Origin: Macrostomum lignano
Taxonomy: Eukaryota
NCBI GenBank assembly: GCA_002269645.1
Contig: NIVC01004602.1
Location: 1-40,834 of the forward strand
Direction of reading: 5' to 3'
DNA length: 40,834 nt
Part shown: positions 626-23,093 of the stretch, one piece after another
Position numbering within the stretch: the stretch's first letter is position 1
How the letters are laid out: each line of letters opens with the position of its first letter
Made by a program: the position numbers and the translations under genes
Notes under the pieces: model-generated
What the model was told of the DNA's origin: nothing
What the model saw: only the letters and a program-made list of their open reading frames with translations
Database searches by the model: none

Positions 626-2310
626 TTATCTACGACTGAAAATCAGCCGATAATCTCCGGGCACTCGCAGTGATCCCATGTGTCCCCTGAGGATGTCGTC
701 CTTCTTTGCCGCACTCTCCGGCTCCGGCCGCACCCGGTACCGCTGCATGATGGCCGTGAAGAACAGGAAAATCTCCATTCGCGCCAGAGACTCGCCAACG
801 CAAGAGCGCCGACCAATCAGGAACGGGATGAGGTACGGACTGCTCCGGTAGCGACCTTTGTTGTCGAGAAAGTGCTCAGGGTAGAACTCGTTCGGTCTCT
901 CCCAGTACTCGGCTCGGTGGTGGACGCCGTAAACCAGTGGGATGATGATCGCATCGCTCGGGATTCGGTAGCCGTGGAAGGTTGCGTCTTCCACTGAGCG
1001 ATGGAAAACTCCGATGGCAGCCAGCGAGGCTTTTCTGTAGGTCTCGTCGATGACAGCGCTGGTGTAGTGCAGTTCTGTCCTGTCCTGCATCCGTGGACGC
1101 CTCGATTGACCGACGACGGAGTCGAGCTCGTTCTGGACTCGGTCCTGCACCTCCGGATAGAAGGCCATGTAGAGCAGCAGCCACTCCATCGATCGGGCGG
1201 TCGTGTCAGTGCCGGCCAGGTAGAACTCGAAGCACACTCGGATGAGCTGGAACTCCTTGAACGTCTCAAAGTCGCCAGCCTTCTCAGCCTTGCGCTTCTC
1301 CTGTTGTAAAATTTACGAAATGGTTTAGCACTAATTGGTTTACTTTTATACTAGTGCTGGTCTTCGGACCAAATTCTAAATTCTTCCAGCGGTCTCACCT
1401 GGATGTACGCATCGCACAGGCAGGTGGGCTGCACATCGGACCCAGCCGGCATCGCCGCCTCCCGCAGTCGGATCTGCTGGCGAAAGAACTCGTTCAGGTA
1501 TTCGACATCGCGAAACACCCGCGTAGACATCGGTATGATGTCCAGCAGCTTCTCGGCGGCCGGGAACAGAAAGCAGGCGGTCTCGGAGATGCCCGACTCC
1601 AGCGTGGCCGCGATCAGGCTGGTCACCTTCTTGAAGTCGGGATCGTCGCGGTGAAACCGCCTGCCAAGCGTCATCTCGGTGATGACGGAATTCACGGCCA
1701 GCAGAAATGTGTCCAGAGTTTTCACCGGCTGCGCAGCCTCCGCTGCCTCGTCCAGCTGCTGCAGCAGCGGCTCCAGCTGGTCCTCGATCATGCCAACCGC
1801 CTTGGAGCCGGAGAACCCGATCTCACGCAGGGTCCTCAAACTCAGTCGTCTCTGATGGCACCAGACTTTGCCTTCGACTAGAAATATGCCACAGTTCCTG
1901 GTCATCTTCTCAAACAGGCGCAGTCTTGGCCTGCCCGCAAACACCGGGTCGTCCAGCATCTCCTTCATCAGCGGATAGGAGTTCACTACCACAAACAGTC
2001 GGCCGCCCAGATAGAACGAGCACAAGTCGCCGTACTTCTGGCATTCCTTCTGCATCGTCAGGTGCAGGCACAGGGCGTCGGCCCAGGGCAGTCGCCCCAG
2101 CAGCGGCACCCCGACAGGCCCGGGCGGCAGGTCGCGAGCTCGCCTCCAGCTGCAGTAGGCTGCGTAGGCGGCGGCGGCGGCTGCCACGGCTACCATCGCC
2201 GTAGCTGCCGAGCACATTGTCGAACTGCTGGACGTCGAACTCGAAGCCAAGCCGGTGACCGCCAGCGTCCAGTGCAGCCAGTCGGTGAACAGTTGGCGAT
2301 GCGGTTGCAT
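626..2310 (-). CDS. Cytochrome P450, clan 2 (CYP2-like), copy 1; intact; exons 2310-1399 and 1300-626
   Basis: PPGP hinge (DLPPGPVGVPLLG), WxxxR (WCHQR), I-helix AGTDTT, ExxR (ETYR), PERF-like NEFYPEHF and heme motif FLIGRRSCVG. Phase-0 intron 1301-1398 (GTGAGA...ACAG). First in-frame ATG is 2310 (528 aa); alternative ATG at 2217 (497 aa). Confidence 0.95.
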
Positions 2311-2537
2311 TGCAGTTTGGCTTATGTAGGCTGTCTTATTAGATGGCGAACAGACGAAGGCGTAAAGGGAGCGGTTACTGTCTAGCGGAGCGGCGCTTGT
2401 CCTTCATTAGATAGTCCTCGGGTTAAGGGGGGGGGGGAGACTCCCAGCCAACCGGGTGTGTGTCTGCGGGTGGCCAGTTGTGCCTTAGCTTTTTAGCCAA
2501 TTGTGTTTGCCAAAGAAAGCTCTCGACAGGGTGCTAT

Positions 2538-2549
2538 TTTTATATCTGC
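2538..2549 (-). promoter_or_regulatory. TATA-like element GCAGATATAAAA upstream of CYP copy 1
   Basis: The same 12-mer lies on the sense strand upstream of copy 2 (12436-12447). Confidence 0.35.
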
Positions 2550-2881
2550 GTCTGTCTAACCGCGCTTACGCAGCGAGTATTTGCGCATTGCTGCTGCATG
2601 GGTTCGTCAAGTTTATTCACACAAGCTCAGGGCGCAAATACCGCAGACAAGAAATGGAAGAATCCATGCCGAAATTTAATTTGTTTCCCAAAACGATTCT
2701 GAATTAGACTAGACAATGTAACCTTGTAGAGTGCGACTGCAGCGGAGTATAGTGTAAAAAACAGTCAATATTTTTAATCGCGTGATCTTAGTTTCTTAAA
2801 TAATTTGTTTCCATTTAAATGAGACGGTACGGCAACTAGAGTTCAGTCTGGATCATTTTGCTAAAAACCGCTCATTGACCC

Positions 2882-3678
2882 CTAGAAAAGCCACTAAATG
2901 ACTACTAGAAAAGCCACTAAATGACTACTAAAAAAGCCACTGAATGACTACTAGAAAAGCCACTAATTGACTACTAGAAAAGCCACTAATTGACTACTAG
3001 AAAAGCCACTGAATGACTACTAGAAAAGCCACTAATTGACTACTAGAAAAGCCACTAATTGACTACTAGAAAAGCCACTAATTGACTACTAGAAAAGCCA
3101 CTAATTGACTACTAGAAAAGCCACTAATTGACTACTAGAAAAGCCACTAATTGACTACTAGAAAAGCCACTAAATGACTACTAGAAAAGCCACTGAATGA
3201 CTACTAGAAAAGCCACTAATTGACTACTAGAAAAGCCACTAAATGACTACTAGAAAAGCCACTGAATGACTACTAGAAAAGCCACTAATTGACTACTAGA
3301 AAAGCCACTAAATGACTACTAGAAAAGCCACTGAATGACTATTAGAAAAGCCACTAATTGACTACTAGAAAAGCCACTAATTGACTACTAGAAAAGCCAC
3401 TAATTGACTACTAGAAAAGCCACTAATTGACTACTAGAAAAGCCACTGAATGACTACTAGAAAAGCCACTAATTGACTACTAGAAAAGCCACTAAATGAC
3501 TACTAGAAAAGCCACTGAATGACTACTAGAAAAGCCACTAATTGACTACTAGAAAAGCCACTAATTGACTACTAGAAAAGCCACTAATTGACTACTAGAA
3601 AAGCCACTAATTGACTACTAGAAAAGCCACTAAATGACTACTAGAAAAGCCACTAATTGACTACTAGAATAGCCACTA
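2882..3678. repeat. Minisatellite, 23-bp unit CTAGAAAAGCCACTAATTGACTA, about 35 copies
   Basis: Head-to-tail units; variants AAT/ATT/GAA at one position. Confidence 0.97.
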
Positions 3679-4770
3679 CATGTAATTGACTAGGAGCTTG
3701 ACTTGGCTAAAAAGCCCTAGAAGCTTGTTATAAAAATCAATGAAAAATCGTCAGAAAGCACAACATTTCCAAACGAATACTAGCAATAACTTGCTGTCTG
3801 AGGCCAATACCGTCCTCTAGTACAGACAACAGAATTCTTGTGTCTCTAGACCCTGAATTCGTGGCTTTTTGACCTTATACCTATTTATCCCATTCAACAC
3901 CATCACCACTGAAAGCCAGTCCAGTAGGCTTACTAATTTAAGGTTTAAGGTCAGACGGCTTGACCCAAGGTACGAGCAATATCATATACGAAATCCGCTT
4001 TGCTGTACAAACGTACGGCACAGCCCGGAGCCTCGTTACTTCACTGTGAGCTTCACCCTGCCCTAACTCTTCCCCCTTAGTGGAAAGGAGGTTGTTCCCT
4101 CCTGAAAGAGGCCGCCTGCGAGTTCGCGCGCACTTTTTAATCATTTTTCATTTTCTGCTACAGGCATAGGCTTTCTTTTTCTAAAACCAGCTGTGTATAA
4201 CAAAATCTGCGCAATATTATTAATCCCTGCAGATTCAGTAGAAACTGAGATTTTTCACAGTTGTGAAATTTCATAACTCCAACAATTTACACTCGACATC
4301 ACAATTCCCAAGCTTCACAACTTCCATTTCTGATCTAAGTTGGTAACCCGTCTCAAAAGTAAAATGATCTTGAATTGAGCACTTGGAGGAAATTTGAGCA
4401 GTGCATAAGTTCGAGAGGCAAAAGGGCAACAGGTTCAGACGAGTCGCCTAAGTGCAAAAGGCTAAAAATGATATGCAAAGTGAACTTTTGGGGCAGTTGT
4501 CAGACACTTGAACTCGGCTCGCCCCTCCGCCAGTCGCGTCATGTCAATAACCATGGAACGAGAAGGATTCAGCTCTCCTCTTTCCTCTCCCTCTCTCTGT
4601 CTTTCTTTCTTACCCAGACTTCTCTATATACTCCTCAAGCGCATTTTAAATACTTCAGTATAATATTGTACGTACTCGAACTCTGAGTCATGGAGTACTA
4701 AAACATAGTCCATCTTGATTTATAGTAACTACTTGCAGAAACATTTTCCCAAGATCTATCTGCAACATAA

Positions 4771-4885
4771 GCAACAACAACCACAACAATAACAACTAAC
4801 AAAACAAAAACCAACAACGAATGTGCACCTATTTCCGCCCACCGGCTGCCTGCAGCGTCATCAGCAGCACCTCTTATACCTTGGG
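4771..4885 (-). mobile_element. Possible very degraded 3' fragment of the same RTE-type LINE family
   Basis: Minus strand GAGGTGCTGCTGATGACGCTGCAG (EVLLMTLQ) resembles the EVLL motif of the elements at 16.2 and 24.2 kb and is followed by a degenerate (TTG)n tail. Confidence 0.35.
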
Positions 4886-5199
4886 TTGCTGTATTGTTTA
4901 ATAGCTAAGCTAAATTCCATGCTAATAGAAATAGTTTTCGCATTCCATGGCTGTTTAGTTTGTCGAAGCGAGAGAGACAGGTAGAGAGAGACAGAGAGGC
5001 TTAGATGAGCTAGTTAGAAAGCACTTGCTTTTATTAAAGTACGCTTGGACTTATCCAGGGCTGTCTTTTTAACTGTCCCCGCCTTGCAGAGGTGTAGTGT
5101 GAGCTTGTGACATAGAAGAAGCAAGATAGAGTAGCTGGTATTCATATGAAATTACACAGAATGACATGCGAGTAGTTGTTATGAACGGCAGACACAAGA

Positions 5200-6127
5200 G
5201 GTCACAAGACCTAAAATACGAGTTCAGTGGTCCAGATGCCAGGTTACACTTGTCACTAAGCCTAAAATATGAGTTCAATTGTCCAGATGCCAAGTTACAC
5301 TGGTCACTAAGCCTAAAATATGAGTTCAGTGGTCCAGATGCCAGGTTACACTGGTCACTAAGCCTAAAATACGAGTTCAGTGGTCCAGATGCCAGGTTAC
5401 ACTTGTCACTAAGCCTAAATACGAGTTCAGTGGTCCAGATGCCAAGTTACACTGGTCACTAAGCCTAAAATACGAGTTCAGTGGACCAGATGCCAAGTTA
5501 CACTGGTCACTAAGCCCAAAATACGAGTTCAGTTGTCCAGATGTCAAGTTACACTTGTCACTAAGCCTAAAATATGAGTTCAATTGTCCAGATGCCAAGT
5601 TACACTGGTCACTAAGCCTAAAATATGAGTTCAGTGGTCCAGATGCCAGGTTTACACTGGTCACTAAGCCTAAAATACGAGTTCAGTGGTCCAGATGCCA
5701 AGTTACACTGGTCACTAAGCCTAAAATACGAGTTCAATTGTCCAGATGTCAAGTTACACTGGTCACTAAGGCTAAAATACGAGTTCAATTGTCCAGATGC
5801 TAAGTTACACTGGTCACTAAGCCTAAAATATGAGTTCAGTTGTCCAGATGCCAAGTTACACTGGTCACTAAGCCCAAAATACGAGTTCAGTTGTCCAGAT
5901 GTCAAGTTACACTGGTCACTAAGCCTAAAATATGAGTTCAGTGGTCCAGATGCCAGGTTTACACTGGTCACTAAGCCCAAAATACGAGTTCAGTTGTCCA
6001 GATGCCAAGTTACACTGGTCACTAAGCCTAAAATATGAGTTCAGTTGTCCAGATGCCAAGTTACACTGGTCACTAAGCCTAAAATATGAGTTTAGTGGTC
6101 CAGATGCCAGGTTACACTTGTCACTAA
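5200..6127. repeat. Minisatellite, 51-bp unit GTCACTAAGCCTAAAATACGAGTTCAGTGGTCCAGATGCCAAGTTACACTG, about 18 copies
   Basis: 51-bp period (e.g. 5252, 5303). The unit length is a multiple of 3, which creates spurious repetitive ORFs. Confidence 0.97.
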
Positions 6128-7130
6128 ATAAAATTACAAAGTGATAATTAGCAGGGTTTGTCTGCGTCTGTCGTAAGAGTATAGTTATAATCTGTGCTTA
6201 TTAGTACCAATAAAAAAATAATTAGCCATTTCATACCATATCACATGTTTTAGAGCTACAATTAGGAGCTTTCATGCCAGTATGAAGACTTTTCTAAGAA
6301 ATTATATGGGTGCAATTACAGGCTTTAAGTAAATAGCCATTGAAGAAGACCCGTGGATTCAGTTGCGCTGACCTTCCAGGGTCCACATGCGTTGAGTCAT
6401 TGAGTCTAGCTGTAGTTTTCTTGCAGAATTGCGAACCTGTCATTTAGGTATTTTTGAGAGTTGATAGTTTTGAGACCTGAATAATGCCCCACCCTTTAGT
6501 GCACTTAAGCCGCACTGCATTGTAAATTGAGAGGCGAGGGTGAAGGAGACGACCCAGGGTAAAACCCCTGTCACTAATTCTCTGCATAACACCTATTATA
6601 CTCTGCTGCCAAAGCATTCGTAGTATGCCCTGAATTCTCTCTCTCACGCGGCCCCGCAAGGCCAGTTCACTGCTCTCTGCATGCTAGAAAGCTAACTAAC
6701 TGCAAGCGGTGCAGGGTCACGCCCGATACAAATCCGGTACAGAATCAGTTTTTAGACCTCTGGGGTGGGGTGGGGGAGGGGCGGGTGCTACAGGTCGGGC
6801 CCTCAGTAAACAATGGTTGCAGTGTTTCTCACCTTTTGGGAAGCTGTTTACTGCGGTGAGAGAAACCAGCTGCGCCGGGCTTTTATGTGGTTTTTAGGGG
6901 CTTTTTTACGGCAGAGCTAGTCTACACTTTTCTGAACTCGGTGACCTCTGCATTTGGAGCTGTGGAGCCTGTGGCTATGAGGGGGAGATTATTTAGTGCA
7001 AATGGCACGGAATCAGAGCTTGCACTTTTGCATTTGCATTTGCACTTAAAATACGACACTTTCTTCTGGCATGAAATGAGAGCAAATTTATTCGCGATTC
7101 AAACAGAGTTTTCGCGATTGATTCAAATAA

Positions 7131-9038
7131 AGTCTGTATTTGAATCTATCGCTACAGTCTGTATTTGAATCGGTCTCTACCTGGTAAGTCTGTATTTGAA
7201 CCTATCGCTACAGTCTGTATTTGAATCGGTCTCTAAGTCTGTATTTGAATCTGTCTCTAAGTCTGTATTTGAATCTATCGCTACAGTCTTTATTTGAATC
7301 GGTCTCTAAGTCTGTATTTGAATCTGTCTGTAAGACTGTATTTGAATCTGTCTCTAAGTCTGTATTTGAATCTGTCTCTAAGTCTGTATTTGAATCTGTC
7401 TCTAAGTCTGTATTTGAATCTATCGCTACAGTCTGTATTTGAATCTGTCTCTAAGTCTGTATTTGAATCTATCGCTACAGTCTGTATTTGAATCGGTTTC
7501 TAAGTCTGTATTTGAATCGGTCTCTAAGTCTGTATTTGAATCTGTCTGTAAGACTGTATTTGAATCTGTCTCTAAGTCTGTATTTGAATCTGTCTCTAAG
7601 TCTGTATTTGAATCTGTCTCTAAGTCTGTATTTGAATCTATCGCTACAGTCTGTATTTGAATCGGTTTCTAAGTCTGTATTTGAATCTGTCTCTAAGTCT
7701 GTATTTGAATCTATCGCTACAGTTTGTATTTGAATCAGTATCTAAGTCTGTATTTGAATATATCGCTACAGTCTGTATTTGAATCAGTATCTAAGTCTGT
7801 ATTTGAATCTGTCTGTAAGTCTGTATTTGAATCTGTCTGTAAGTCTGTATTTGAATCTGTCTCTAAGTCTGTATTTGAATCTGTCTGTAAGTCTGTATTT
7901 GAATCTGTCTCTAAGTCTGTATTTGAATCTATCGCTACAGTTTGTATTTGAATCAGTATCTAAGTCTGTATTTGAATCTATCGCTACAGTCTGTATTTGA
8001 ATCAGTATCTAAGTCTGTATTTGAATCTATCGCTACAGTCTGTATTTGAATCTATCGCTACAGTCTGTATTTGAATCGGTCTCTAAGTCTGTATTTGAGT
8101 CTATCGCTACAGTCTGTATTTGAATCTGTCCTCTAAATCTGTATTTGAATCTGTCTCTAAGTCTGTATTTGAATCTATCGCTACAGTCTGTATTTGAATC
8201 TGTCTCTAAGTCTGTATTTGAATCTATCGCTACAGTCTGTATTTGAATCGGTATCTAAGTCTGTATTTGAGTCTATCGCTACAGTCTGTATTTGAATCTG
8301 TCCTCAAAATCTGTATTTGAATCTGTCTGTAAGTCTGTATTTGAATCGGTCTCTAAGTCTGTATTTGAATCGGTCTCTAAGTCTGTATTTGAATCGGTCT
8401 CTAAGTCTGTATTTGAATCTGTCTCTAAGTCTGTATTTGAATCGGTCTCTAAGTCTGTATTTGAATCTGTCGCTACAGTCTGTATTTGAATCTGTCGCTA
8501 CAGTCTGTATTTGAATCTGTCGCTACAGTCTGTATTTGAATCGGTCTCTAAGTCTGTATTTGAGTCTATCGCTACAGTCTGTATTTGAATCTGTCCTCTA
8601 AATCTGTATTTGAATCTGTCTGTAAGTCTGTATTTGAATCGGTCTCTCTAAGTCTGTATTTGAATCTGTCTCTAAGTCTGTATTTGAATCTATCGCTACA
8701 GTCTGTATTTGAATCTGTCTCTAAGTCTGTATTTGAATCTATCGCTACAGTCTGTATTTGAATCTATCGCTACAGTCTGTATTTGAATCGGTATCTAAGT
8801 CTGTATTTGAGTCTATCGCTACAGTCTGTATTTGAATCTGTCCTCAAAATCTGTATTTGAATCTGTCTGTAAGTCTGTATTTGAATCGGTCTCTAAGTCT
8901 GTATTTGAATCGGTCTCTAAGTCTGTATTTGAATCGGTCTCTAAGTCTGTATTTGAATCTGTCGCTACAGTCTGTATTTGAATCTGTCGCTACAGTCTGT
9001 ATTTGAATCTGTCGCTACAGTCTGTATTTGAATCGGTC
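7131..9038. repeat. Minisatellite of mixed 24-bp (GTCTGTATTTGAATCTGTCTCTAA) and 25-bp (GTCTGTATTTGAATCTATCGCTACA) units, about 1.9 kb
   Basis: Near-invariant core TCTGTATTTGAATC with two alternating tails; rare variants recur in blocks. Confidence 0.97.
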
Positions 9039-9436
9039 TAGAGACTTGGAGACTGATTAAAAAAGACTCTAAACTAGGAGGGCAAAATTATTTCGCTAAT
9101 TGGCTCTTCTGTGCACTAGAAGTTTTGAAGCGAAAATATTGCTACTACGATTGCAAGTTGTGCCTCAATTCTCTCCCGGGGGGATTTTCGGTTCTGCATT
9201 CTGTGCGACTTTTTGGACTGACGAACTGAAGCAAGTTGGGTCGGTTTAGGGGTGGGGGAGTTTGTGGGAGACAGAAAAACAAGGAAAGTTCTGAAGGGGC
9301 AGGACAAACAGAAAGAATCCGATTGAAAAGTAGTACGCAGTACTAGAAATTAGAATAGCGTTGTTTATAATGAACGTTTTTGAGCTGAAGGAATAAATAT
9401 GAGGGATAGAGAGAGTGGGGAGAGTGTTGAGAAAGA

Positions 9437-10018
9437 GGACAGCGGAGAGGAGGAGGAGACAGCGGATAGAGGAGGAGACAGCGGATAGAGGAGGAGACAG
9501 CGGATAGAGGAGGAGACAGCGGATAGAGGAGGAGACAGCGGATAGAGGAGGAGACAGCGGATAGAGGAGGAGACAGCGGATAGAGGAGGAGACAGCGGAT
9601 AGAGGAGGAGACAGCGGATAGAGGAGGAGACAGCGGATAGAGGAGGAGACAGCGGATAGAGGAGGAGACAGCGGATAGAGGAGGAGACAGCGGATAGAGG
9701 AGGAGACAGCGGATAGAGGAGGAGACAGCGGATAGAGGAGGAGACAGTGGAGAGGAGGAGAGAGCGAAGAAGAGGAGACAGCGGATAGAGAAGGAGACAG
9801 CGGATAGAGAAGGAGACAGCGGATAGAGGAGACAGCGGAGGAGGAGACAGCGGAGAAGAAGAGGGGACAGCGGATAGAGAAGGAGACAGCGGATAAAGGA
9901 GACAGCGAAGGAGGAGACAGCGGAGAAGAAGAGGGGACAGCGGATAGAGGAGGGAGAAGAAGAGGAGAAAGCGGAGAAGAAGAGGAGACAGCGGATAGAG
10001 GAGGAGACAGCGGATAAA
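9437..10018. repeat. Purine-rich minisatellite, 19-bp unit GGAGACAGCGGATAGAGGA
   Basis: Near-perfect copies 9460-9745, degenerating to the right. Confidence 0.95.
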
Positions 10019-10510
10019 GAGGGAGACTGTTGTGTAGATAATATTAATGCAATACTTGTGGTTATTAGAAATAGCTAACCCTTTTGCTTCGAAACGAAAG
10101 CGCACGCGATGCGCTACTAAGAGTAGGCTACTTACCATTTTTGAACCATATGATCATAGGCTGTAGTGTCAGTTTTCGACTGTAAAACGTCGATCTGAAT
10201 TTATTTTATGTCCATCTGTCAGGGAGTTAAAAGTTAAAGAACAAAAAAAGCATAAAAGATATCTCTATTTTGTCTGGGAGGACACGATTACACAAAAATA
10301 CACTAAATTACAATTATCAATTAACTCTTATAAATATCTCGTAAGCTCTAAAGTTACTCTTCAGATTTTTATACTTAGCCAGTTAAAACCATTGTATCGG
10401 TTACTCGGCTAATGTGCTTCCGTATAAAAAGATAGAATAAACTATAGCAGTTAGCTCTTTAGACAGACCGTGATAGTTTTCACTGTGGTCAAGCTCTGAT
10501 TCAGCTGGCA

Positions 10511-12367
10511 TCAGCGCCGGTCCATCGTGACTTGATAGTCGCCGGGAAATACGAAAGCCCCAATTGATCCAGCGAGGATCTCCTCTTTGCGGGCGGCGAA
10601 CTCCGGCTCTGGCCGCACCCGGTACCGCTGCATGATGGCCGTGAAGAACAGGAAAATCTCCATTCGCGCCAGAGACTCGCCAACGCAAGAACGCCGACCA
10701 ATCAGGAACGGGATGAGGTACGGACTGCTCCGGTAGCGACCTTCGTCGTCGAGAAAGTGCTCAGGGTAGAACTCGTTCGGTCTCTCCCAGTACTCGGCTC
10801 GGTGGTGGACGCCGTAAACCAGTGGGATGATGATCGCATCGCTCGGGATCCGGTAGCCGTGGAAGGTTGCGTCTTCCACTGAGCGATGGAAAACTCCAGT
10901 ACCGACCAGCGAGGCCTTTCTGTAGGTCTCGTCGATGACAGCGCTGGTGTAGTGCAGTTCTGTCCTGTCCTGCATGCGTGGACGCCTCGATTGACCGACG
11001 ACGGAGTCGAGCTCGTTCTGGACTCGGTCCTGCACCTCCGGATAGAAGGCCATGTAGAGCAGCAGCCACTCCATCGATCGGGCGGTCGTGTCAGTGCCGG
11101 CCAGGAAGAACTCCATGGTCACTCGGATGATTTGGTGCTCTTTGAACGTCTCAAAGTCGCCAGCCGTCTCAGCTTGGCGCTTCTCCTGAAATTAGTTGCA
11201 AAGCCGAGCAATATGGGGTGACATGATGACACGCGCTTGAGTAAACAACCGAATACCTGGCTGTTTTTTTGTCTTCTTCTTTACAAAATGACCACGAAAA
11301 CTTCTGTAGCAATCCAAAGTAACTGGTTAGGTCTCTCTATTGTGCTAAGTATTGTGAGAGGGCAAAACGTGTCATCAAAGTCTGTGTGTCTTTGAGAATT
11401 CCAAAAAAGCATTAGTAGTGATATATAAGCTCTGTTTCGGGAGAATCTCGCTGCAGGAAAACTTTATCGATTGATAGCGTTAGATCGAGATGTTATTAGC
11501 TCACCTTAATGTAGGCATCGCAGAGGCACTGCGGCTCAACGCTCTCATCTTTCATCACCGCTTCGCGTTTGCGAATCTGGCCCGAATCATGTCGTGCAGG
11601 CGCTCGGTGTCGCTAACAAGACTGCTCGAGGCCGGCACGAGGTCAGCCAGCCGTTCCATAGCTGGGAACAGGAACTCCACACCTTGAATGATGCCATCTT
11701 CTATCAGCTTCTTGACAATGGCGTTCACCAGCTTCATAGCTGGATCGTCGGCTTCGAACTTCTGTCCAAGCGTCATCTCCGCGACGATGGCGTTTGAAGC
11801 CAGTAGGAAGGTTTCTAGCAGCTGGACTGGCTCGTACAGAGCGGCGATCTCGTCAAAGCCGTTGAACATGCTATCGAGCTGTTCGTCTACCATCTCCACC
11901 GTCCGCTTTCTAGCGAAGCCGAAGTCGCGTAGAGTGCGCAGACTTAAGCGTCGCTGCTGATTCCAGACGTCGCCCTCCGTGAAGATGATGCCGCAGCCGC
12001 GGGTCAGCTTCTTGAATAGGCGGAGCTGCGGCCTGCCGGAGAACATCTGACTGTCCAGCATCTCCTTCATCAGCGGGTACGAGTTCACTACAATAACCAG
12101 TCGCGAGCCAAGGTAAAACGAACTGATGTCGCCGTACTGTTGACAGATCTTCATCATGCTTCGGTGCATCTGGTTGCGACTTATCCATGGCAACCGTCCT
12201 AGCACGGGCAGGCCTACGGGTCCGGGCGGCAGGTCGCGACCCTGTCGCCAAGAGTACAGCATGTACGCCGCGGCAAGTCCCGCGGCCGCTGGTGCAGCTA
12301 CCGTATAGAAATTATCCCCTAGGAGGCTGGCTAAGGATTTCGGTAGCATTTCTATGACTCCTTCCAT
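10511..12367 (-). CDS. Cytochrome P450, clan 2, copy 2; exons 12367-11505 and 11185-10511; one -1 frameshift at about 11580
   Basis: All P450 motifs present; intron 11186-11504 (GTGAGC...TTCAG). Exon 1 is 863 nt. Adding one base in ATTCGGGCCAGATT restores QIRKREAVMKDESVEPQCLCDAYIK, collinear with the paralogs (512 aa). Confidence 0.88.
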
Positions 12368-12435
12368 CTGTAGCTGAGTTTTAGATTCGTGACAGTTGGC
12401 AAAGTTTCTTTGGTTTTCTTATGACTTTTAGAGAA

Positions 12436-12456
12436 TTTTATATCTGCATTTTATAT
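12436..12456 (-). promoter_or_regulatory. Two TATAAAA boxes about 70-90 bp upstream of the CYP copy 2 ATG
   Basis: Minus-strand TATAAAA at 12442-12436 and 12456-12450. Confidence 0.4.
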
Positions 12457-13016: not shown

Positions 13017-13283
13017 AATGACCGAGACATCCCATTCTTAGAAACGCAGAGACAGACATCCCATTCCTAGAAACGCCGAGACATCCATTCCTAGAAACAC
13101 CAAGACTTCCCATTCCTAGAAACGCCAAAGCTTCCCATTTCTAGAAACGCCGAGACATCCAAATCCTAGAAACACCAAGACTTCCCATTTCTAGAAACGC
13201 AGAGGCATCCCATTCCTAGAAACGCCGCGCACGAGATATCCCATTCTTAGAAACGCCTGGAGACATCCCGTTCCTAGAAACGT
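13017..13283. repeat. Short tandem repeat, about 24-25-bp unit GAGACATCCCATTCCTAGAAACGCC, about 10 copies
   Basis: Recurrent TTCCTAGAA/TTCTTAGAA/TTTCTAGAA core. Confidence 0.9.
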
Positions 13284-13933
13284 TATCGATTGGCAACAGC
13301 TTAATCCGTAGCTGCACTTCAAGTTTGATTCTGGCGTTAAACTTTACATTACTTGGATGGCCTCTTATTCTCAAGATAATTTGTATAGCTTTACATTACG
13401 TATTAGTTAATTTTTTACTCCTATTTTTAGAAACATAAAAAATACACTGATATTCGGCAACCCAACATTAAATTTAGTTTTCTCTAAATGTTGTATTGCA
13501 TAGCTACTTGCTGAGTAGCATATCAAGCGCTTATTTCTCTATTATAGAAGGGAGTGTAAAATTGCATAGATTTAAAAAAGTAGAAAAAATACCAATGTAG
13601 CTACTAAGCTAACAAGTAGTACTGTCGAGTCACGGCTTACGCATTGCTAAATTTCAAAACTGGAAGAGAACACAGCTTATAATTATTATTTAAGCATAAA
13701 TCGCAGTTTGCTTCCAGCGCTATTATTTATCTGCTAATAACTACAAAAGAAGAAAGCGTTGAGCCATCCGAAATACTTCAAGTACTACATCCTGACAAAA
13801 TCAATGGAGTCAATCTTTCGCTTATACACGGTTTAGGCTGTTGAAATAAATATAAGCTATGATATCAAAGCTGAATTTTCTCTTAAAAACATGCTTAGAA
13901 TGTCGCTGGCAAAAGCTGTCCAAAACCAAAGCC

Positions 13934-15591
13934 TTACCGTAGACTTATTATGAGTCGATTTTCACCAGGAATTCTCACCGCTCCGAGCTGACCGGTGAGG
14001 ATCTCCTCTCTGCGGGCCGCGCACTCCGGCTCCGGCCGCACCCGGTACCGCTGCATGATGGCCGTGAAGAACAGGAAAATCTCCATTCGCGCCAGAGACT
14101 CGCCCGGGCAGGCGCGCCGACCAATCAGGAACGGGATGAGGTACGGACTGCTCCGGTAGCGACCTTCGTCGTCGAGAAAGTGCTCAGGGTAGAACTCGTT
14201 CGGTCTCTCCCAGTACTCGGCTCGGTGGTGGACGCCGTACACCAGCGGAAGGATCACAGCATCGCTGGGGATCCGGTAGCCGTGGAAGTTCGTGTCCTCT
14301 ACGGCTCGGTGGAACAGACCACAGGCTACCAGCGAAGCTTTTCTGTAGGTCTCGTCGATGACAGCGCTGGTGTAGTGCAGTTCTGTCCTGTCCTGCATCC
14401 GTGGACGCCTCGACTGACCGATTACGGAGTCGAGCTCGTTCTGGACTCGGTCCTGCACCTCCGGATAGAAGGCCATGTAGAGCAGCAGCCACTCCATCGA
14501 TCGGGCAGTCGTGTCAGTGCCGGCCAGGAAGAACTCGAAGCACACTCGAACGATCTGAAACTCCTTGAACGTCTCAAAGTCGCCAGCCTTCTCGGCTTTT
14601 CGTTTTTCCTGGAAGCGATTAGAAAGTTTTTTGAAGTTGCCTCAATTATAGCATTCTGCTGGACTTTAATTCTAATAATTTATATGTCATAGCTTACTAG
14701 CAGGTACGTATCGCACAGGCATCGCGGTTGAGCTCCCTCCGTCTCCATGATCTTCTGGCGTTTACGGACTTCCTCTTGGATGAAGTTGTGCACGAAATCT
14801 GCTTTGACAATTCTCGCATCGGTCATTGGCAGCACGGAGACGAGCAGTTCAACCGCTTTGTATAGAAATGGGGCACTTTGAAACAGGCGAAGTTGAATCA
14901 GGTCGTTGATGTTGGAGTTCACCTTTTGAAAGTGCGGATCATTCCTATCGAACCTTTTGCCGAGCGTCATCTCGGTGATGACAGAGTTCGAAGCCAGCAG
15001 AAAGCTATTCACCACTTTAGCGCCCGCGCAAGACGAGGAAAATCTGTCGAAGCACTCGAAGATGATGTCCAGCTGGTCGTCGATCATATCGATCGTTTTC
15101 AGGCGCGCGAAGCCGGAGTCGCGAAGCGATTTGAGACTCAACCGACGGTGCCGGCTCCACTGCTCGCCTTCTTTGATGAGGATTCCGCAGTCGCGCGTAA
15201 CTCGTCGCATAAATGACATCTGCGGTCGTCCGGCGAACGTTTGGTCGTCCAGCATCTCCTTCATAAGCGGGTAGGAGTTCACGATGACGAATAGTCGCGA
15301 GCCAAGGTAAAACGAACAGATGTCGCCGTATCTTTCGCACTCCTTCGCCATAGTCAGGTGGATGTTGTCCATGTCAGACCAAGGCACTCGGCCGAGCACT
15401 GGGACACCGACGGGGCCAGGGGGGAGGTCGCGGTTTCGAACCCAGCGGTTCAATAGATAGACCCCAGCAGCGGCGGCTGCAGGAACAGCTGTCAGAAAAA
15501 GCCATTTTTTGTCATTCTCAAGGTTCAACAAGCTCGTCAATAGCGATCTAGTAGACAATGGGCCTGGCAGAAGCCCGCTTAGTGACGCCAT
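13934..15591 (-). CDS. Cytochrome P450, clan 2, copy 3; intact; exons 15591-14698 and 14608-13934 (522 aa)
   Basis: ATG 15591 (the ORF track starts at a TTG). DLPPGP, WSRHR, AGTDTT, ETYR, heme motif FLIGRRACPG; 89-bp phase-0 intron GTAAGC...CCAG. Confidence 0.95.
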
Positions 15592-16176
15592 TTTGGCTTG
15601 TGGCTTGTGCAAAGAGCAGCTATATAGAAACTGAATGCTAGTAGCATAATTCAGCCCCTTTTATGCTCGCGCAACCCAGGTTATTTTCCATTCTTCTTTT
15701 TTCGATTGTCCGAGCTTCTTCCAGTTGTAGCCCTCTAAAACTTTTAGAGGGTAAATCTAAAATTAGCTGCATTGTACTTCTGCCCACCTAAAACAGGTTT
15801 TCAAGCCTCTTTTTCTATCGCAGCTTTGCTAGACAACCTCCTCGGTTCTCTACATAGGTATAAGCGCTCAGCGACTAGAGAAGAGTTTCGTCATTTTGTG
15901 TTACTCACCTCACTCAGAGTTGAAATTATGAGACAACACAGGTCTGGCTACGAATTTGAGAACCTGCAAAGCACTATTTATCAGTTGTGTTCTCTTAAAG
16001 ATTTCTTGCAGGGACTTGCTTTTTAGAAATATAGAATCTAGAAGGAAACCCTGAAAATTGCTGGCGCGGCCTTCGGCAGCTCTGAGGCAATTCTGCTCAT
16101 TCCGGTGACTCCTGAGCACAAACAAGGGCGCCGATACTGTATGCAGGCACGCACTCATGCACTACACACGCTCACA

Positions 16177-16892
16177 AAAACAACAACAACAACAACAACA
16201 AAATACGCGTTCAGCGTCACACGGCGCGCCTCAGGGCCGGGTCGCGAATGAACGCCACTCCGCCAGCCGAATCCGGGGTGCCGGCGTCAGCCAGCAGGCA
16301 GTCGATGAGTTCGGGCCTGCCTATGCGATATGCGTTAGCAGCAGCACCTCCTGCACCGGCTGTGCGCAGTACGACTTTGGCGCGGATGATGTGGCCTGCC
16401 AGCTGGAGTCGCCGTCGGCGCAACAGGTCGCTTGGACGGACTAGGCCGTCGCGGCAATACAAAGCCGCGTTGGTCACTCGCTCGTAGCCGATCTTGAAGG
16501 CGCCGCGTCAAGGCGCTCGCTGTCCGAGTGCTCGAGCGACTCCGTCAGCGTCAAGGTCTCTGCGCTGTACAGCAGGACGGTCTCGATCACCGCCTGGAAC
16601 AACACCGCCCTCTTGGCGGTCAGGTAAGGCCTCGGACTGCAGGACTGCCCTCACAGAACGAAAGGCAGCCCAGGCAAGCCCGCGGCGACGCCGCAAATCC
16701 TCGCGGACGCCGGGAACCAGACCGCCGAGGTAGACGAACTGCTGACAACGCGGAAGCTCTGTCGCCTGTCCATCAGCACCTCGGCACGAAATCGCAGCCT
16801 CGATGTCGTCCGGCACGCAGAGCACGACGGTCTTCTGAGTGTTGACCACCAGGCCGACACTCGCAGCAACAGCAACTGGGTTGTCCAGCTCC
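16177..16892 (-). mobile_element. 5'-truncated, frameshifted RTE-type non-LTR retrotransposon with (TTG)n tail and 10-bp TSD
   Basis: RT C-terminal motifs GLVVNTQKT, QQFVYLG, LFQAVIETVLLYSAET and RRRRLQLAGHII in shifting frames; tail 16177-16202; direct repeat CACGCTCACA at 16167-16176 and 16893-16902. Confidence 0.9.
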
Positions 16893-17548
16893 CACGCTCA
16901 CACAGGGTGTACAGTAGCTTTCTGAATCGCACAGCAACCACCTGACCAATTTTTATGCGCAAAGGCCAAATAAATTCGCTGTCCGAGTGGCCTCTGCCCC
17001 AACCTGGCCTCCACCCCGCCGAACGATCTTCTAATTTAGTTGTCCATGATGCCAAGCAACCCTGTGCGTCAGTATACCACAGTAAAGCAGTTCTACAGCT
17101 AAGACTAAGCAATTATTTTCACTATTCCAACCCATTACGCGAATCGAACAGTAGAGGGCATCTCAGGCTAAGGTTAATCGTTATAGTGCATTTTATCTGC
17201 AACCGGTTATGCGCATTTCAATTTAGCCCTGAAACTCATACCCTGCTGTATGGCCCTGTGAGTCTAAATCTGACTCTGCATTCGCTATTATTCCAAGCTT
17301 GAAGAGCGAGCTCATTCTGTGCTCATTCTGTGCGATAAAGCTGCGTTGAAAGGGTGTCTAAAAATAGTTTGTGCTGAAGCCAGCTTAGCCATCTTTAATG
17401 CTGCATATGACGCATTTGCGCGTAACCTCCAAATCTTATAGACACTGAACGGTATAGGCAGTTTCTTATCTTTTAAACAGGCTTCAGTTTCTGATTGGAA
17501 AGATTCACGAACTAATGAGTGCACTAATGAGAAGGCACAACACCACGA

Positions 17549-18047
<499 letters not shown>

Positions 18048-19121
18048 TTTGCAGGCAGAATAAGGAAACAGTTAGCATGGAACATCTATTCCCTAAAAAG
18101 ATTTCTGACCTTTAAGAAGATGCTGAGGGTTTGAAAAAGACATTATTTGGATAAAACCATTTGGTCTTTCTTTTGTCAAGAGTTACAAGAAACTGTGAAG
18201 AAAGCAGTTGATGATTTGATAGGTTGCGATGTGATGGTTTTTTAGCAATTATCCAATTCTCCAAAAGTAGTCTATAGACAACCTTCTTTAGCCAGATCCT
18301 TTGTAGCAGATTAAGTATATTGAACCAGAGCATAAAAGGAGATTGCGCAATGTCCACTCTTATCTTGCCCACCTTTTCAAAACTTCTACAGTTAACGATT
18401 GGACAGTTGAACATAAAGTCTAGCAAGTTATTATTGAGAAGAAAAAAAATCAAAACTAAATTGAGCTAACTCTATTCCAGATTACAATCGGTCTGAACCA
18501 CCTGTAAATTGGTTTGAGTAGGTTTGAGTAATCTTTGACCTGCGGAGTTGCTTGCGGCAGCGTTAACTTGCCTTTATGCAACTGTAGGTGAGAGCAATAT
18601 TGCATTTGCATATAAATATGAGCCACTTCTATTTTTTGCTTGCTACTGTTCTGCAAAAACCTTTTTGTTCTCATCTTGCATCTCTCTCAGCTTTCTGAAA
18701 ACGACAATGCAGTGTAGGTGTTTTTTGCTCGGGCTTGATTTGTCAAAATAATTAAATAGCTGCAGCCATGGCCTGTGTATTTTCCATTGGAATTAATAAC
18801 GTACGCTAAACAATCCAGCAAACCGTACCTCCTGCCATCCTCTTTTCATTCCTTACCCTCACACTCTGCAAAGCCCTCTTGTACGAGCTACTAGCCTGTG
18901 TGTTCAAAATTAACTAGGGTGTACACCGGTCACAGTGTACACTCTGCCCTAACCGTACAAGGAGAATGTACTCAAAGTATACGCCTGCCCAACAGCTTGG
19001 GGTAACTGAAAAGAAAAACCTTTACACGCTAAAGAGCTTTTGCAAAACAGAAAACACTTCTGCGAACCCTGAGGCTGAAAGAGTGCTTTGCTACTAGCGA
19101 AGAAACTAGAAGTAAACAAAA

Positions 19122-20752
19122 ATGCTTCGCCAGATTCTGCCGTCGCAACTGGTGAGTCTAGCGGACTCCGTTTTCTCCCAATCGGACAGCAGCTACAAGA
19201 AGGCCATCGCAACTGCCGCGATACCCGCCGCTCTCGGGGCCTACGTCCTCTACTACTGGCGACAAGGACGCGACCTCCCTCCCGGTCCTGTAGGCCTGCC
19301 TCTCATTGGCCGTCTGCCATGGACCGATCCGAAGAACTTGCACCTCACGATGCAGAAAGTGGCAGAGAAGTACGGCGACATTACTTCGTTCTACCTTGGC
19401 TCGCGCCTGCTCATTGTGCTCAACTCTTACCCGATGATGAAGGAGATGCTGGACGACTACAACTTTGCTGGTAGACCGAGACTGCGTCTGTTCTTAAAAC
19501 TGACCCGCGACTGCGGCATCATCTTCACGGAGGGAGACATGTGGAGCCAGCATCGTCGATTGAGTCTGCGAACTCTGCGAGACTTCGGCTTTGCTAGAGC
19601 GCAAACTGTAGAGATGGTCGACGATCAACTGGACTCCATCTTCCAGACGCTTGATGAGGCCGCGACGTCGGTCACACCGATGGAGGTGCTCGGCACTTTC
19701 ATTCTCGCCTCCAACTCGATCATCACTGAGATGACACTCGGTCACCGATTTGAGCGAAACGATCCCGAGTTTCAGAAGGTCAACAAGCTCATCAAGAAAC
19801 TACTTGAAGAGGGCATTGTTCAAACGGCAAGCGCTTTGTTCCCAGCTGTTGAACGATTCATCGTACTGTTCCCGCTATCAAGCAGCGTCGTTCACGATGT
19901 TGAATATCTGCACTCGTTCATACGGAAAGAGATCCAACAGCGTGAGAAGGTGATGGTCGACGAAAGCACAGAACCGGAATGTCTATGCGATGTCTACATC
20001 CACGTGAGTGAATTAAGGCTTCACTATTTCTACAGTCGTATAAATAACAGCAATCCCTTTGATTAACTTTCTCACAGGAAAAGCGCAAGGCTGAGAAGGC
20101 TGGCGACTTTGAGACGTTCAAGGAGTTCCAGCTCATACGCGTAATCCTTGAGTTTTTCCTGGCCGGCACTGACACGACCGCCCGATCGATAGAATGGCTG
20201 CTGCTCTACATGGCCTTCTATCCGGAGGTGCAGGACCGAGTCCAGAACGAGCTCGACTCCGTAATCGGTCAGTCGAGGCGTCCACGGATGCAGGACAGGA
20301 CAGAACTGCACTACACCAGCGCTGTCATCGACGAGACCTACAGAAAGGCCTCCCTCGCTGCCATCGGGGTGTTCCACCGAGCCGTTGAGGAAACCCATTT
20401 CCACGGCTACCGGATCCCATCGGATGCTTTCATCATTCCGAACGTGTACGGCGTCCACCACCGAGTCGAGTACTGGGAGAGACCGAACGAGTTCTACCCT
20501 GAGCACTTCCTCGACAACGAAGGTCGCTACCGGAGCAGTCCGTACCTCATCCCGTTCCTGATTGGTAGGCGTTCTTGCGTTGGCGAGTCTCTGGCGCGAA
20601 TGGAGATTGTCCTGTTCTTCACGGCCATCATGCAGCGGTACCGGGTGCGGCCGGCCCCGGAGAGTGCGGCAAAGAAGGATGACATCCTGTCTGGTTGGAT
20701 GGGATCTTTGCGTATTCCAGGTGAATACCGTCTGATTTTCGACCGCCGTTAG
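19122..20752 (+). CDS. Cytochrome P450, clan 2, copy 4; intact; exons 19122-20003 and 20078-20752 (518 aa)
   Basis: ATG 19122; DLPPGP, WSQHR, AGTDTT, ETYR, FLIGRRSCVG; 74-bp phase-0 intron GTGAGT...ACAG. Confidence 0.95.
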
Positions 20753-21463
20753 GTCTCCTGATCGCCAGGTTCTGGTTCTGAACTGTGCGTACATATCCAT
20801 TGTTTTCAATTTAAAATCTGACGTAACGAGATCAGTTTGAAACTTCAATTTTAGCTACACTTAGCACATTGGATTGAATTTACGTTGTTATTTCTCACAG
20901 TGGAAAAATTTCACTGCTGTATTCTTTTTTTCAAGCCTACTTTTTCCAGAAAGCAGTTTTTTTATTGTAGCTATCACAGTATTTGAATATGTTCTTAGAA
21001 TCTTAGCCACTCATATCACAGTGTACATCTTTTTGTGAAATAAAATAAATACGAGTGTTATAAAAACAAGTAGAGTAAACCTTTTTGTCTTTAAAATTTG
21101 GTACTTATTACTTATGAAAAGTTTTACTCAGAACTTTTGGCTAATTTTAGAGCACGATTATCACAAGACCAAAAACAACTCAACGAGGCCACAAAGCAGA
21201 CAGACGCTAGAACGATAAGGGTAAATCAAGTAATAGGTGTTACAGTATAGCTAGTTGCTATTTAGCTACTATTCCAACTGAGCGAACCACTCGCTAAGCG
21301 CTTTGCAGGTGCACGTACCATACATATAAGGACTGGAATATCTTGGAGATATTTAGAACGATTATAATTAAGCAAATTCTGGGTAAAAATGTAATTTTTA
21401 TCATGTGCAGGGCCAAATGAAAACAACAGAAGCTACTTTTGTTCTAAAAATATCAATCAAGGT

Positions 21464-23093
21464 CTATCGACGGCTCATAATCAACTGGTATCGCCCCGGC
21501 ATCCGCAAAATTCCAAGACGACCAGACGGAATGTCGTCCTTCTTCTTGCCGCACTTTCCAGCTCCGGCCGCACCCGGTACCGCTGCATGATGGCCGTGAA
21601 GAACAGGACAATCTCCATTCGCGCCAGAGACTCGCCAACGCAAGAGCGCCGACCAATCAGGAACGGGATGAGGTACGGACTGCTCCGGTAGCGACCTTCG
21701 TCGTCGAGAAAGTGCTCAGGGTAGAACTCGTTCGGTCTCTCCCAGTACTCGGCTCGGTGGTGGACGCCGTACACCAGCGGAAGGATCACAGCATCGCTGG
21801 GGATCCGGTAGCCGTGGAAATGGGTTTCCTCAACGGCTCGGTGGAACAGACCACAGGCTACCAGCGAAGCTTTTCTGTAGGTCTCGTCGATGACAGCGCT
21901 GGTGTAGTGCAGTTCTGTCCTGTCCTGCATCCGTGGACGCCTCGACTGACCGATTACGGAGTCGAGCTCGTTCTGGACTCGGTCCTGCACCTCCGGATAG
22001 AAGGCCATGTAGAGCAGCAGCCACTCCATCGATCGGGCGGTCGTGTCAGTGCCGGCCAGGAAGAACTCGAAGCACACTCGGATGAGCTGGAAATCCTTGA
22101 ACGTCTCAAAGTCGCCAGCCTTCTCAGCCTTGCGCTTTTCCTAATAAGTAGTCATGGTGGCAATCAAATCGTTAAAGTTTCAGCTGTTAAAAAATAATTT
22201 GTGTTTTTGTGCTCCTGTCTGAATTCGAGTTTTTACCTGGATATATACATCGTAGAGACACTCGGGTTCCGTACTTTCATCCACCATTATCTTCTCACGC
22301 TGTTGGATCCCTTTCCGTATGAACGAGTGCAGGTACTCTAGATTCTGAACAACGCTGCTTGATAGACCAAACAGCTCACCAAATCTGTCAATGATCGGAA
22401 ACGAGACACTTGCTGATTCGGTTATGCCGTCGTCAGGTAGTTTTTTCATCAATGCATTGACTTTCAAGAACTCGGGATCGTTTCGCTCAAATCGGTGACC
22501 GAGTGTCATCTCAGTGATGATGGAGTTGGAGGCGAGAATGAAAGTGCCGAGCACCTCCATCGGTGTGACCGACGTCGCGGCCTCATCAAGCGTCTGGAAG
22601 ATGGAGTCCAGTTGATCGTCGACCATCTCTACAGTTTGCGCTCCAGCAAAGCCGAAGTCTCGCAGAGTTCGCAGACTTCCGTGAAGATGATGCCGCAGTC
22701 GCGGGTCAGCTGTAAGAATAGACGCAGTCTCGGTCTACCAGCAAAGTTGTAGTCTACCAGCATCTCCTTCATCATCGGGTACGAGTTGAGCACAATGAGC
22801 AGGCGCGAGCCAAGGTAGAACGAAGTAATGTCGCCGTACTTCTCTGCCACTTTCTGCATCGTGAGGTGCAAGTTCTTCGGATCGGTCCATGGCAGACGGC
22901 CAATGAGAGGCAGGCCTACAGGACCGGGAGGGAGGTCGCGTCCTTGTCGCCATTAGCCATTAGTAGAGGACGTAGGCCCCGAGAGCGGCGGGAATCGCGG
23001 CAGTTGCGATGGCCTTCTTGTAGCTGCTGTCCGATTGGGAGAAACGGAGTCCGCTAGACTCGTCAGTTGCGACGGCAGAATCTGTCGAAGCAT
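21464..23093 (-). pseudogene. Cytochrome P450 copy 5, pseudogene; exons 23093-22237 and 22140-21464
   Basis: Relative to copy 4: -1 T at about 23043; TAC>TAA plus a 7-bp duplication (TAATGGC) at about 22947-22962; a 31-bp deletion at about 22680 removing WSQHR; +2 nt at about 21545. Intron 22141-22236 keeps GT-AG. Confidence 0.92.

Follow-up and report, generated by a model that had tools for sequence, protein, structure and literature searches.

A cluster of five two-exon P450 genes

The window analysed here is the whole of contig NIVC01004602.1, a stretch of 40,834 nt from the Macrostomum lignano DV1 assembly Mlig_3_7 (GCA_002269645.1). Positions 626-23093 of the window contain five cytochrome P450 (P450) genes in 22 kb, c1 to c5, each built of two exons. 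Our subject is the evolution of their second exons. We propose that the genes are old tandem duplicates in which exon 2 has been recurrently homogenised by short-tract interlocus gene conversion, an explanation to which we assign a probability of about 0.8.

The introns of c1 to c5 are all GT-AG and in phase 0, with lengths of 98, 319, 89, 74 and 96 nt. Exon 2 is 675 nt long in c1, c2, c3 and c4 and 677 nt in c5, and these lengths and positions agree with a first-pass annotation made from the letters of this DNA. Three genes on the minus strand come first: c1 (exon 1 at 1399-2310, 912 nt or 304 codons, covering the region of substrate-recognition sites (SRSs) 1-3; intron at 1301-1398; exon 2 at 626-1300, running from the I helix to the stop codon), c2 (exon 1 at 11505-12367, 863 nt; intron at 11186-11504; exon 2 at 10511-11185) and c3 (exon 1 at 14698-15591, 894 nt; intron at 14609-14697; exon 2 at 13934-14608). 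c4 lies on the plus strand (exon 1 at 19122-20003, 882 nt; intron at 20004-20077; exon 2 at 20078-20752). c5, arranged tail-to-tail with c4, is on the minus strand (exon 1 remnant at 22237-23093; intron at 22141-22236; exon 2 at 21464-22140). The c1 protein is identical to the annotated protein P0003 (BOX15_Mlig001422g2) and the c4 protein to P0131 (BOX15_Mlig002316g1/g2).

c1, c3 and c4 are intact as read, and c2 is probably intact as well. Exon 1 of c2 contains a 1-nt frameshift at a GGG run at 11584. The run is GGGG in contig NIVC01002926.1 (L003) and in a second copy of the cluster (L002, described below), and c2 as read in both encodes an intact 512-aa protein. The idea that c2 is a second pseudogene was ruled out, since the frameshift comes down to a difference in homopolymer length from L003, a contig without substitutions against the window. 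Its probable source is an error of the assembly in a PacBio homopolymer, which would also account for the truncated 270-aa annotation in the window. Window positions 1-12308 are assembled again at the end of L003 with 99.94% identity. The two differ by no substitution, but in the length of homopolymers and by shifts of the alignment in tandem repeats; the overlap is a redundant assembly of one haplotype, not a separate locus.

c5 is a genuine pseudogene, an inverted and decayed copy of c4. What is left of its exon 1 resembles c4 (91%), carries several frameshifts and has lost 31 nt in a deletion. Exon 2 of c5, a mosaic of c3-, c4- and c1-type blocks, is shifted in frame by a 2-nt insertion near codon 199, which is also found in the second cluster copy. 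The identity of c5 exon 1 to c4 and to c4' (c4 in the second cluster copy) is higher in the 5' part and lower in the 3' part (about 95-97% vs about 85%, the remnant being divided into 22235-22677 and 22678-23099), which could come either from uneven decay or from a further sequence donor.

c4 matches the Pfam p450 profile PF00067 with 348.8 bits (E=6e-104) over profile positions 1-461 of 462, and c1 matches it over its full length with 323.3 bits (E=3e-96), both scores exceeding the gathering threshold. The signature motifs AGTDTT, ETYR, PEHF and FLIGRRSCVG (FLIGRRACPG in c3) are found in c1-c4 and align with the matching motifs of CYP2B4; an N-terminal PPGP is also present. The closest solved structures are CYP2B4, 2R1 and 2C5, with E about 1e-77. 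On sequence, c1-c5 are clan-2-like P450s rather than members of the CYP2 family, because their best vertebrate CYP2 matches reach only 30-36% identity, below the 40% or more of that family. The CYP2 scheme is used here as a numbering aid. A detoxification role, or the detoxification repertoire proposed in the first-pass annotation, can only be surmised. Our literature search found no paper on M. lignano P450 evolution.

Divergence of the two exons and conversion within exon 2

The two exons differ sharply in their divergence. Identity between copies is 55-65% in exon 1, with c4/c5 as an exception at 91%, vs 85-90% in exon 2. Synonymous divergence (dS, Nei-Gojobori method, NG86) is 1.6-2.6 in exon 1 vs 0.20-0.44 in exon 2, and Fisher tests of this contrast for each pair give p values from 1e-16 to 1e-37. 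According to the first-pass annotation, equally high dS values in the two exons would have spoken against conversion; the values are far apart. Expressed as proportions of synonymous (pS) and non-synonymous (pN) sites that differ, exon 1 has a pS of 0.70 and a pN of 0.32. Third positions differ at 0.54-0.58 in exon 1 vs 0.015-0.054 in the most homogeneous parts of exon 2, termed the cores here. The introns (74-319 nt) are unalignable, and mean pairwise identity there is 0.24-0.43, the random level. It is 0.85 from nt 2 of exon 2 and about 1.0 in the cores. Over nt 577-676 it drops, starting at 0.71 and ending at 0.52, and in the 3' untranslated region (UTR) it is back at the random level. The earlier description of exon 1 and the introns as clearly divergent is thus borne out, and so is that of a 68-nt run common to all five copies. 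This run, TGGCTGCTG...GACTCCGT (exon 2 nt 118-185), is found five times, each time without a mismatch, against a chance expectation of none. Other runs, of 59, 47, 43 and 42 nt, likewise show no variation among the five copies.

Within exon 2, homogeneity is concentrated in two cores. The first (codons 28-89, mean pS 0.054, pN 0.007) spans the C-terminal half of the I helix to the K-helix ExxR motif, and the second (codons 124-191, mean pS 0.046, pN 0.020) spans the meander, the haem-binding loop and the L helix. They are located at 1034-1219 and 728-931 in c1, 10919-11104 and 10613-10816 in c2, 14342-14527 and 14036-14239 in c3, and 21874-22059 and 21568-21771 in c5, all on the minus strand, and at 20159-20344 and 20447-20650 on the plus strand in c4. 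Three variable segments, codons 1-27, 90-123 and 192-224, make up 285 of the 675 nt and hold 129 of the 148 variable nucleotides. Codons 1-27 are intermediate, with a pS of 0.38. Codons 90-123 fall into the haplogroups {c1,c2}, {c3,c5} and c4, and pS is saturated between the groups and low within them. Codons 192-224 have a pS of 0.68 and a pN of 0.27 and are indistinguishable from exon 1; the entire 3' end, not SRS6 alone, therefore lies outside the homogenised stretch. Two of the segments are located at the edges of this stretch, and the internal one, codons 90-123, contains SRS5. The segments contain as many synonymous as non-synonymous differences, which marks them as retained old sequence, not new amino-acid change. 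The first-pass annotation had placed the differences in three patches. The peptides that it quoted for them are all correct and the clustering stands, but the segments are wider than SRS4-6.

Old first exons beside young-looking exon 2 cores could also come from an ancestry resembling UGT1A, in which old alternative first exons were once spliced to a shared exon 2 that was recently duplicated beside each exon 1. The functional split is similar as well, with a variable substrate-binding half and a constant cofactor-binding half. However, the introns are unrelated, codons 90-123 and the last 33 codons of exon 2 are as diverged as exon 1, and the C-terminal SRS6 of c2 has its ortholog in a protein of another species (below). 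Because of this ancient divergence within exon 2 and the SRS6 orthology, each exon 2 would be as old as its exon 1. A shared-exon origin is thus extremely improbable, and it was rejected on the ground that exon 2 includes parts of the same age as exon 1.

The outside comparison was made with one transcript from another species (L001/P0002, here sp2), taken from the Logan assembly of SRR28338165. Exon 1 of sp2 is closest to c2, with a pN of 0.195, vs 0.25-0.34 between c2 and the other M. lignano paralogs. In the exon 2 cores, sp2 differs from every M. lignano copy with a pS of 0.42-0.57, vs 0.05 among the paralogs. Since the core synonymous sites are free to change in this comparison, the near-identity of the cores within M. 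lignano is likely secondary. Neighbour-joining trees with bootstrap, rooted on more distant M. lignano P450s, switch accordingly: the exon 1 tree groups c2 with sp2 at 97% and M. lignano monophyly receives 0%, whereas the exon 2 core tree supports monophyly of M. lignano c1-c4 at 97% and c2 with sp2 at 0%. In the tree of the variable segments sp2 is again with c2, at a bootstrap of only 45%. A search with the sp2 exon 2 peptide found no sp2 paralog among its 10 matches (40-61%), and P0002 itself was also missed by it; the sole Macrostomum match was P0125, an M. lignano fragment of 148 aa, at 61%.

The cross-species values also bear on the idea that there was no conversion and that synonymous sites are held by constraint on the nucleic acid, through an antisense gene, RNA structure or extreme codon bias. 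Long open reading frames (ORFs) do run antisense across every exon 2, at 680-1309(+), 10886-11221(+), 14180-14692(+), 20072-20848(-) and 21712-22197(+), with lengths of up to 258 aa. One is annotated as protein, built into the UniProt entry P0134 (A0A1I8J8E8) and fused there to the c4 product. GC content at third codon positions (GC3) is high in the cores, 0.79-0.81 vs 0.65-0.69. Rather than genes, these ORFs are most likely side effects of a codon usage rich in GC3. Neither mosaics specific to a pair, nor tree incongruence, nor haplotype blocks that match paralogs could be produced by constraint, and the free divergence of core synonymous sites from sp2 argues against it. We rejected it on this cross-species pS and consider its chance of being correct negligible.

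Mosaic structure was examined by a GENECONV-style permutation of polymorphic sites within exon 2, a test suggested in the first-pass annotation. It found significant pair-specific fragments in c1-c2 (nt 342-432, P=0.001), c1-c4 (nt 6-58, P=0.001), c1-c5 (nt 49-78, P=0.0035), c3-c5 (nt 114-306, P=0.0005) and c4-c5 (nt 294-336), the five ranging from P=0.0005 to 0.012. Four of the ten pairs have a fragment with P<=0.0035.

A second copy of the cluster (L002, NIVC01001181.1 281363-303528) is colinear with window 9953-27529 and carries c2', c3', c4' and c5'. It may be either an allele or a homeolog, M. lignano being neopolyploid (PMC5730564, PMC10733133). The two copies are 96.5% identical within the cluster and 98.65% just beyond it (window 23616-27529); a greater divergence of the cluster than of its flank would fit conversion that imports differences. 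c5 and c5' have 37 differences in exon 2, nearly all in blocks that match c1, c3 or c4, and the SRS5 region is c3-type in c5 and c1-type in c5'. c3' carries a c4-type block at nt 309-321. Between c3 and c3', 25 of 675 nt differ in exon 2 vs 4 of 894 in exon 1 (p=1.7e-6); the corresponding numbers for c4 and c4' are 14 of 675 vs 8 of 882. In three UniProt proteins with A0A1I8 accessions (P0133, P0134 and P0135), exon 1 is of the c4' type (G23, N24, F, Y), whereas the c4 exon 2 is of the window type. This mix implies that there is a third haplotype or homeolog, or that the two copies compared have recombined.

The same copies help in judging whether the similarity of the second exons is an artefact of polishing, with short or RNA-seq reads mapped across paralogs by Pilon, or of partial collapse. 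Mlig_3_7 was assembled by Canu from PacBio reads and polished by Pilon with Illumina and RNA-seq data (PMC5730564). Polishing with RNA-seq acts on exons only, which would agree with a boundary that is sharp and coincides with the splice acceptor; homopolymer errors are present in the contig. On the other hand, the copies are not collapsed, since distances of 3-9 kb separate them and each has an exon 1, an intron and a satellite-rich spacer unlike the others. L002 repeats the same cores and has private variants inside them (E50V and D53N in c4'; nt 420, 423 and 477 in c3'), which speak against cross-polishing because it should erase them. Copy-specific patches down to 8 nt persist, and reads of paralogs that are 85-90% identical would still be expected to map best to their own copy. 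The same c4 exon 2 is found in the UniProt A0A1I8 proteins, and so is c3 exon 2, translated in antisense; the source of these proteins is presumably ML2, an assembly made separately. An artefact of this kind is very unlikely.

Concerted evolution of exon 2 by interlocus gene conversion, as proposed in the first-pass annotation, is strongly supported by the core pS, the tree switch, the mosaic fragments and the paralog-matching blocks in the second cluster copy. Under our preferred reading, the duplications would be old, as indicated by the synonymous saturation of exon 1, introns, 3' UTRs and the final ~100 nt of coding sequence, and at least one of them would be older than the split from another species. 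Recurrent conversion tracts of tens to about 200 nt would keep exon 2 nt ~1-576 nearly identical, and conversion would be ongoing at the timescale of the divergence between the two cluster copies. The variable segments would represent old unconverted sequence and not new diversifying substitution, two of them being the edges of the homogenised stretch. Some points weigh against this reading. The cross-species test rests on a single transcript of one species, and Pilon polishing with Illumina and RNA-seq data leaves room for cross-paralog correction. GC-biased conversion would fit the high core GC3, but the other species is also high there and this feature is not diagnostic.

Substrate-recognition sites: selection or homology-limited conversion

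The SRSs were mapped by alignment with CYP2B4, in which codon n of exon 2 corresponds to residue n+269 in SRS4 and SRS5 and to residue n+267 in SRS6. SRS4 is at about codons 18-36, SRS5 at codons 91-101 and SRS6 at codons 205-212; codons 94-98 correspond to CYP2B4 363-367 and codons 207-213 to CYP2B4 474-480. Codons 94-98 are located at 1007-1021(-) in c1 (AAIGV), 10892-10906(-) in c2 (VGTGV), 14315-14329(-) in c3 (VACGL) and 20357-20371(+) in c4 (AAIGV). The variable patches do overlap SRS4, SRS5 and SRS6, as the first-pass annotation had it, though loosely. That annotation went further and proposed that conversion keeps a common catalytic scaffold while selection keeps SRS4-6 different, giving a recombining detoxification repertoire. 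We hold this complete model to be possible, but rather less than probable. Its first half, conversion itself, is well supported. Selection on the variable patches is suggested by a small number of results.

The first result is an island of difference between c1 and c2. Six of their 14 differences over nt 78-576 are packed in nt 281-288 (P<5e-6), that is, in codons 94-96 (CYP2B4 363-365), within otherwise converted sequence. The second is the SRS6 of c2, GSIGAFVFPGD, which matches 8 of 12 residues of GSIGALIFPAD in sp2, vs 4-5 of 12 for the other paralogs. The third concerns the fate of SRS5 residues 94-98: conversion entered this region in c3' and c4' and left the residues unchanged in these working pairs, whereas in the pseudogene pair c5/c5' they were replaced. 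In addition, ten of the CYP2B specificity positions in Table 3 of PMC3425548 fall in exon 2, and five of them (363, 367, 477, 478 and 480) vary among the paralogs. Amino-acid-variable codons are enriched in the SRSs, with 15 of 38 there vs 36 of 186 elsewhere (odds ratio 2.7, p=0.01). A study of primate CYP2D genes reached the same conclusion (PMC4419802).

Other observations count against a role of selection. Synonymous-only variable codons are equally enriched in the SRSs (13 of 38 vs 29 of 186, p=0.012), and 36 of the 51 amino-acid-variable codons are located outside SRS4-6. Within codons 28-191, variability does not differ between SRS and non-SRS codons (p=0.26). The pN/pS ratio is 0.43 in SRS4, 0.20 in SRS5 and 0.60 in SRS6. 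It is below 1 in every SRS and segment and thus gives no support for diversifying selection, although the test is crude and site models lose their validity under conversion. The SRS4 patch is next to the intron and does not include the I-helix contact residues 290, 294, 297, 298 and 302, which are invariant among the paralogs, and the SRS6 patch is the entire last 33 codons with exon 1-like divergence. SRS4 and SRS5 of sp2 are no nearer to c2 than to c1, and the pseudogene comparison is a single pair. Sequence outside the SRSs also escaped homogenisation (exon 1 and codons 102-123, 192-204 and 213-224). What remains of the claim that selection keeps the patches different is the codon 94-96 island, the SRS6 orthology of c2 and the overwriting of SRS5 only in the pseudogene; the low pN/pS, the equal synonymous clustering and the invariant I-helix residues do not agree with it.

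Conversion may instead have been neutral and limited by homology. Tracts would then form only where the paralogs were already similar, segments that drifted early or adjoin the intron and UTR would stay diverged for mechanical reasons, and the overlap with SRSs would merely reflect lower protein constraint there. We regard this proposal, too, as tentative. It accounts for two of the variable segments, which form the edges of the stretch, and for a fall of identity to the random level exactly at the intron and UTR. It is also consistent with old synonymous as well as non-synonymous differences, with a pN/pS no higher than in exon 1, and with a C-terminal segment that is fast between species too (pN 0.23-0.35 for codons 192-224 between sp2 and M. 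lignano). The internal segment is more difficult for it. This segment was crossed in c5/c5', which contain c3-, c1- and c4-type blocks, and by events in c3' and c4', so it is no mechanical barrier. Tract mechanics alone can hardly account for six c1/c2 differences within three SRS5 codons that have nearly identical sequence on either side. Core 1, which spans helices J to K, is not especially conserved in three M. lignano P450s (P0004, P0005 and P0007) that are 50% identical to the cluster genes; the cores are therefore not simply the most constrained parts of the protein.

The three results that point to selection fit the selection model but are few, and the neutral alternative explains two of the three patches equally well. 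Within our preferred reading of old duplicates with a converted exon 2, the odds are roughly even that conversions exchanging SRS5 or SRS6 residues in working copies are eliminated by purifying selection. By analogy with the chicken immunoglobulin pseudo-V genes, tracts could also move SRS-bearing blocks between paralogs, with c5 as reservoir or donor. Haplotypes or subgenomes would then differ in the combination of specificity patches placed on a common scaffold, and the differences between c5 and c5', c3 and c3', and c4 and c4' would be the standing variation of this shuffling. We consider such a role improbable.

Surroundings of the cluster and related systems

Most of the spacer between the P450 genes consists of tandem repeats: a 23-nt unit x35 at 2863-3678, a 51-nt unit x18 at 5200-6127, a 24-nt unit x78 at 7130-9039, a 19-nt unit x32 at 9438-10027, a 25-nt unit x10 at 13013-13282 and (GTCT)x125 at 17549-18048. 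Further repeat arrays extend across 30.5-40.8 kb of the window. An ORF with a WW domain (30007-30402, plus strand; Pfam PF00397, E=2.4e-12) is probably an exon of a neighbouring gene. Our Pfam search found no match for the long ORFs at 35033-35752, 38020-38901 and 39610-40170, or for the GC-rich ORFs (local GC about 0.60) at 16508-17112 (-) and 24185-24571 (+); by eye, the latter two resemble retroelement tails. Elsewhere in the assembly, P0004, P0005 and P0007, encoded on other M. lignano contigs and ~50% identical to c1-c4, share a long, almost identical peptide at the haem-binding loop, …EFYPEHFLDQKGVFTGPGKNVPFLIGRRAC.GEGLARMEVFLMFTAIMQRYRVSLAPEFVG…. Other P450 clusters of M. lignano may be partially homogenised like c1-c5.

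The cluster is a small and clean case of concerted evolution of one exon, in which ancient sequence adjoins freshly homogenised sequence and a pseudogene provides an internal control. The extra cluster copies of a neopolyploid allow conversion events to be dated against each other. For P450 clusters of this kind, trees or dN/dS computed on entire coding sequences will be misleading, and the greater variability of exon 2 than exon 1 between haplotypes would be due to conversion and not to relaxed constraint. If the codons for CYP2B4 363-365 and 474-480 set substrate preference, the cluster would provide an example, outside vertebrates, of selection holding specificity residues against conversion.

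Conversion between P450 genes has been described in several systems, and has been suggested for gastropod CYP4BL genes (PMC3022543). In vertebrate CYP1A1/CYP1A2 and avian CYP1A4/CYP1A5, it is region-specific and includes SRS1 and SRS5 (Goldstone & Stegeman 2006; PMC3199271). As in M. lignano, conversion in CYP1A is specific to a region or exon of old paralogs and is detected by trees that switch between duplication-first and species-first. Unlike in M. lignano, the CYP1A SRSs are not spared, and just two paralogs arranged head-to-head are involved. Conversion between a P450 gene and a pseudogene is reported for CYP21A2/CYP21A1P in the RCCX module (PMC3843699). The likeness is that a P450 gene and a neighbouring pseudogene exchange short tracts, c5 being a clear recipient and a possible donor. 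The CYP21 transfers are known mainly as pathogenic ones into a single functional gene, whereas M. lignano has four functional-looking paralogs and harm is not evident.

Two other families offer parallels. In the primate red/green (L/M) opsins, conversion homogenises the paralogs and selection keeps a few function-defining codons different. The protected sites of these unrelated proteins are shown spectral-tuning residues, unlike the protected codons in M. lignano, whose role is suggested by CYP2B homology. UGT1A combines a variable first exon with shared constant exons. In both UGT1A and the present cluster, a variable N-terminal substrate-binding half is joined to an almost constant C-terminal half that binds the cofactor or haem. 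In M. lignano, however, exon 2 is physically present in every gene, and it is conversion, not shared splicing, that accounts for the constancy.

The closest precedent is the primate CYP2D6/CYP2D7/CYP2D8 cluster, in which conversion occurred across the cluster ‘but not at the SRSs’ and purifying selection on the SRSs was proposed (Yasukochi & Satta 2015, PMC4419802). Conversion that spares SRSs has therefore already been described, and the model of the first-pass annotation is essentially the published one. In both systems tandem CYP2-type paralogs are homogenised and a pseudogene is involved. The SRS sequences of CYP2D keep their paralog or ortholog identity; in M. lignano this applies to SRS6, which is c2-like in sp2 (8 of 12 residues), but not to SRS4 and SRS5, and the segment tree joins c2 and sp2 at 45%. 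Whole genes including introns are converted in CYP2D, whereas conversion in the two-exon genes of this flatworm is confined to about 576 nt of one exon, and exon 1 with SRS1-3, the introns and the 3' end escape. Particular to M. lignano are thus the flatworm host, the restriction to ~576 nt, abruptly limited at the splice acceptor, and the additional neopolyploid copies by which the events can be dated.

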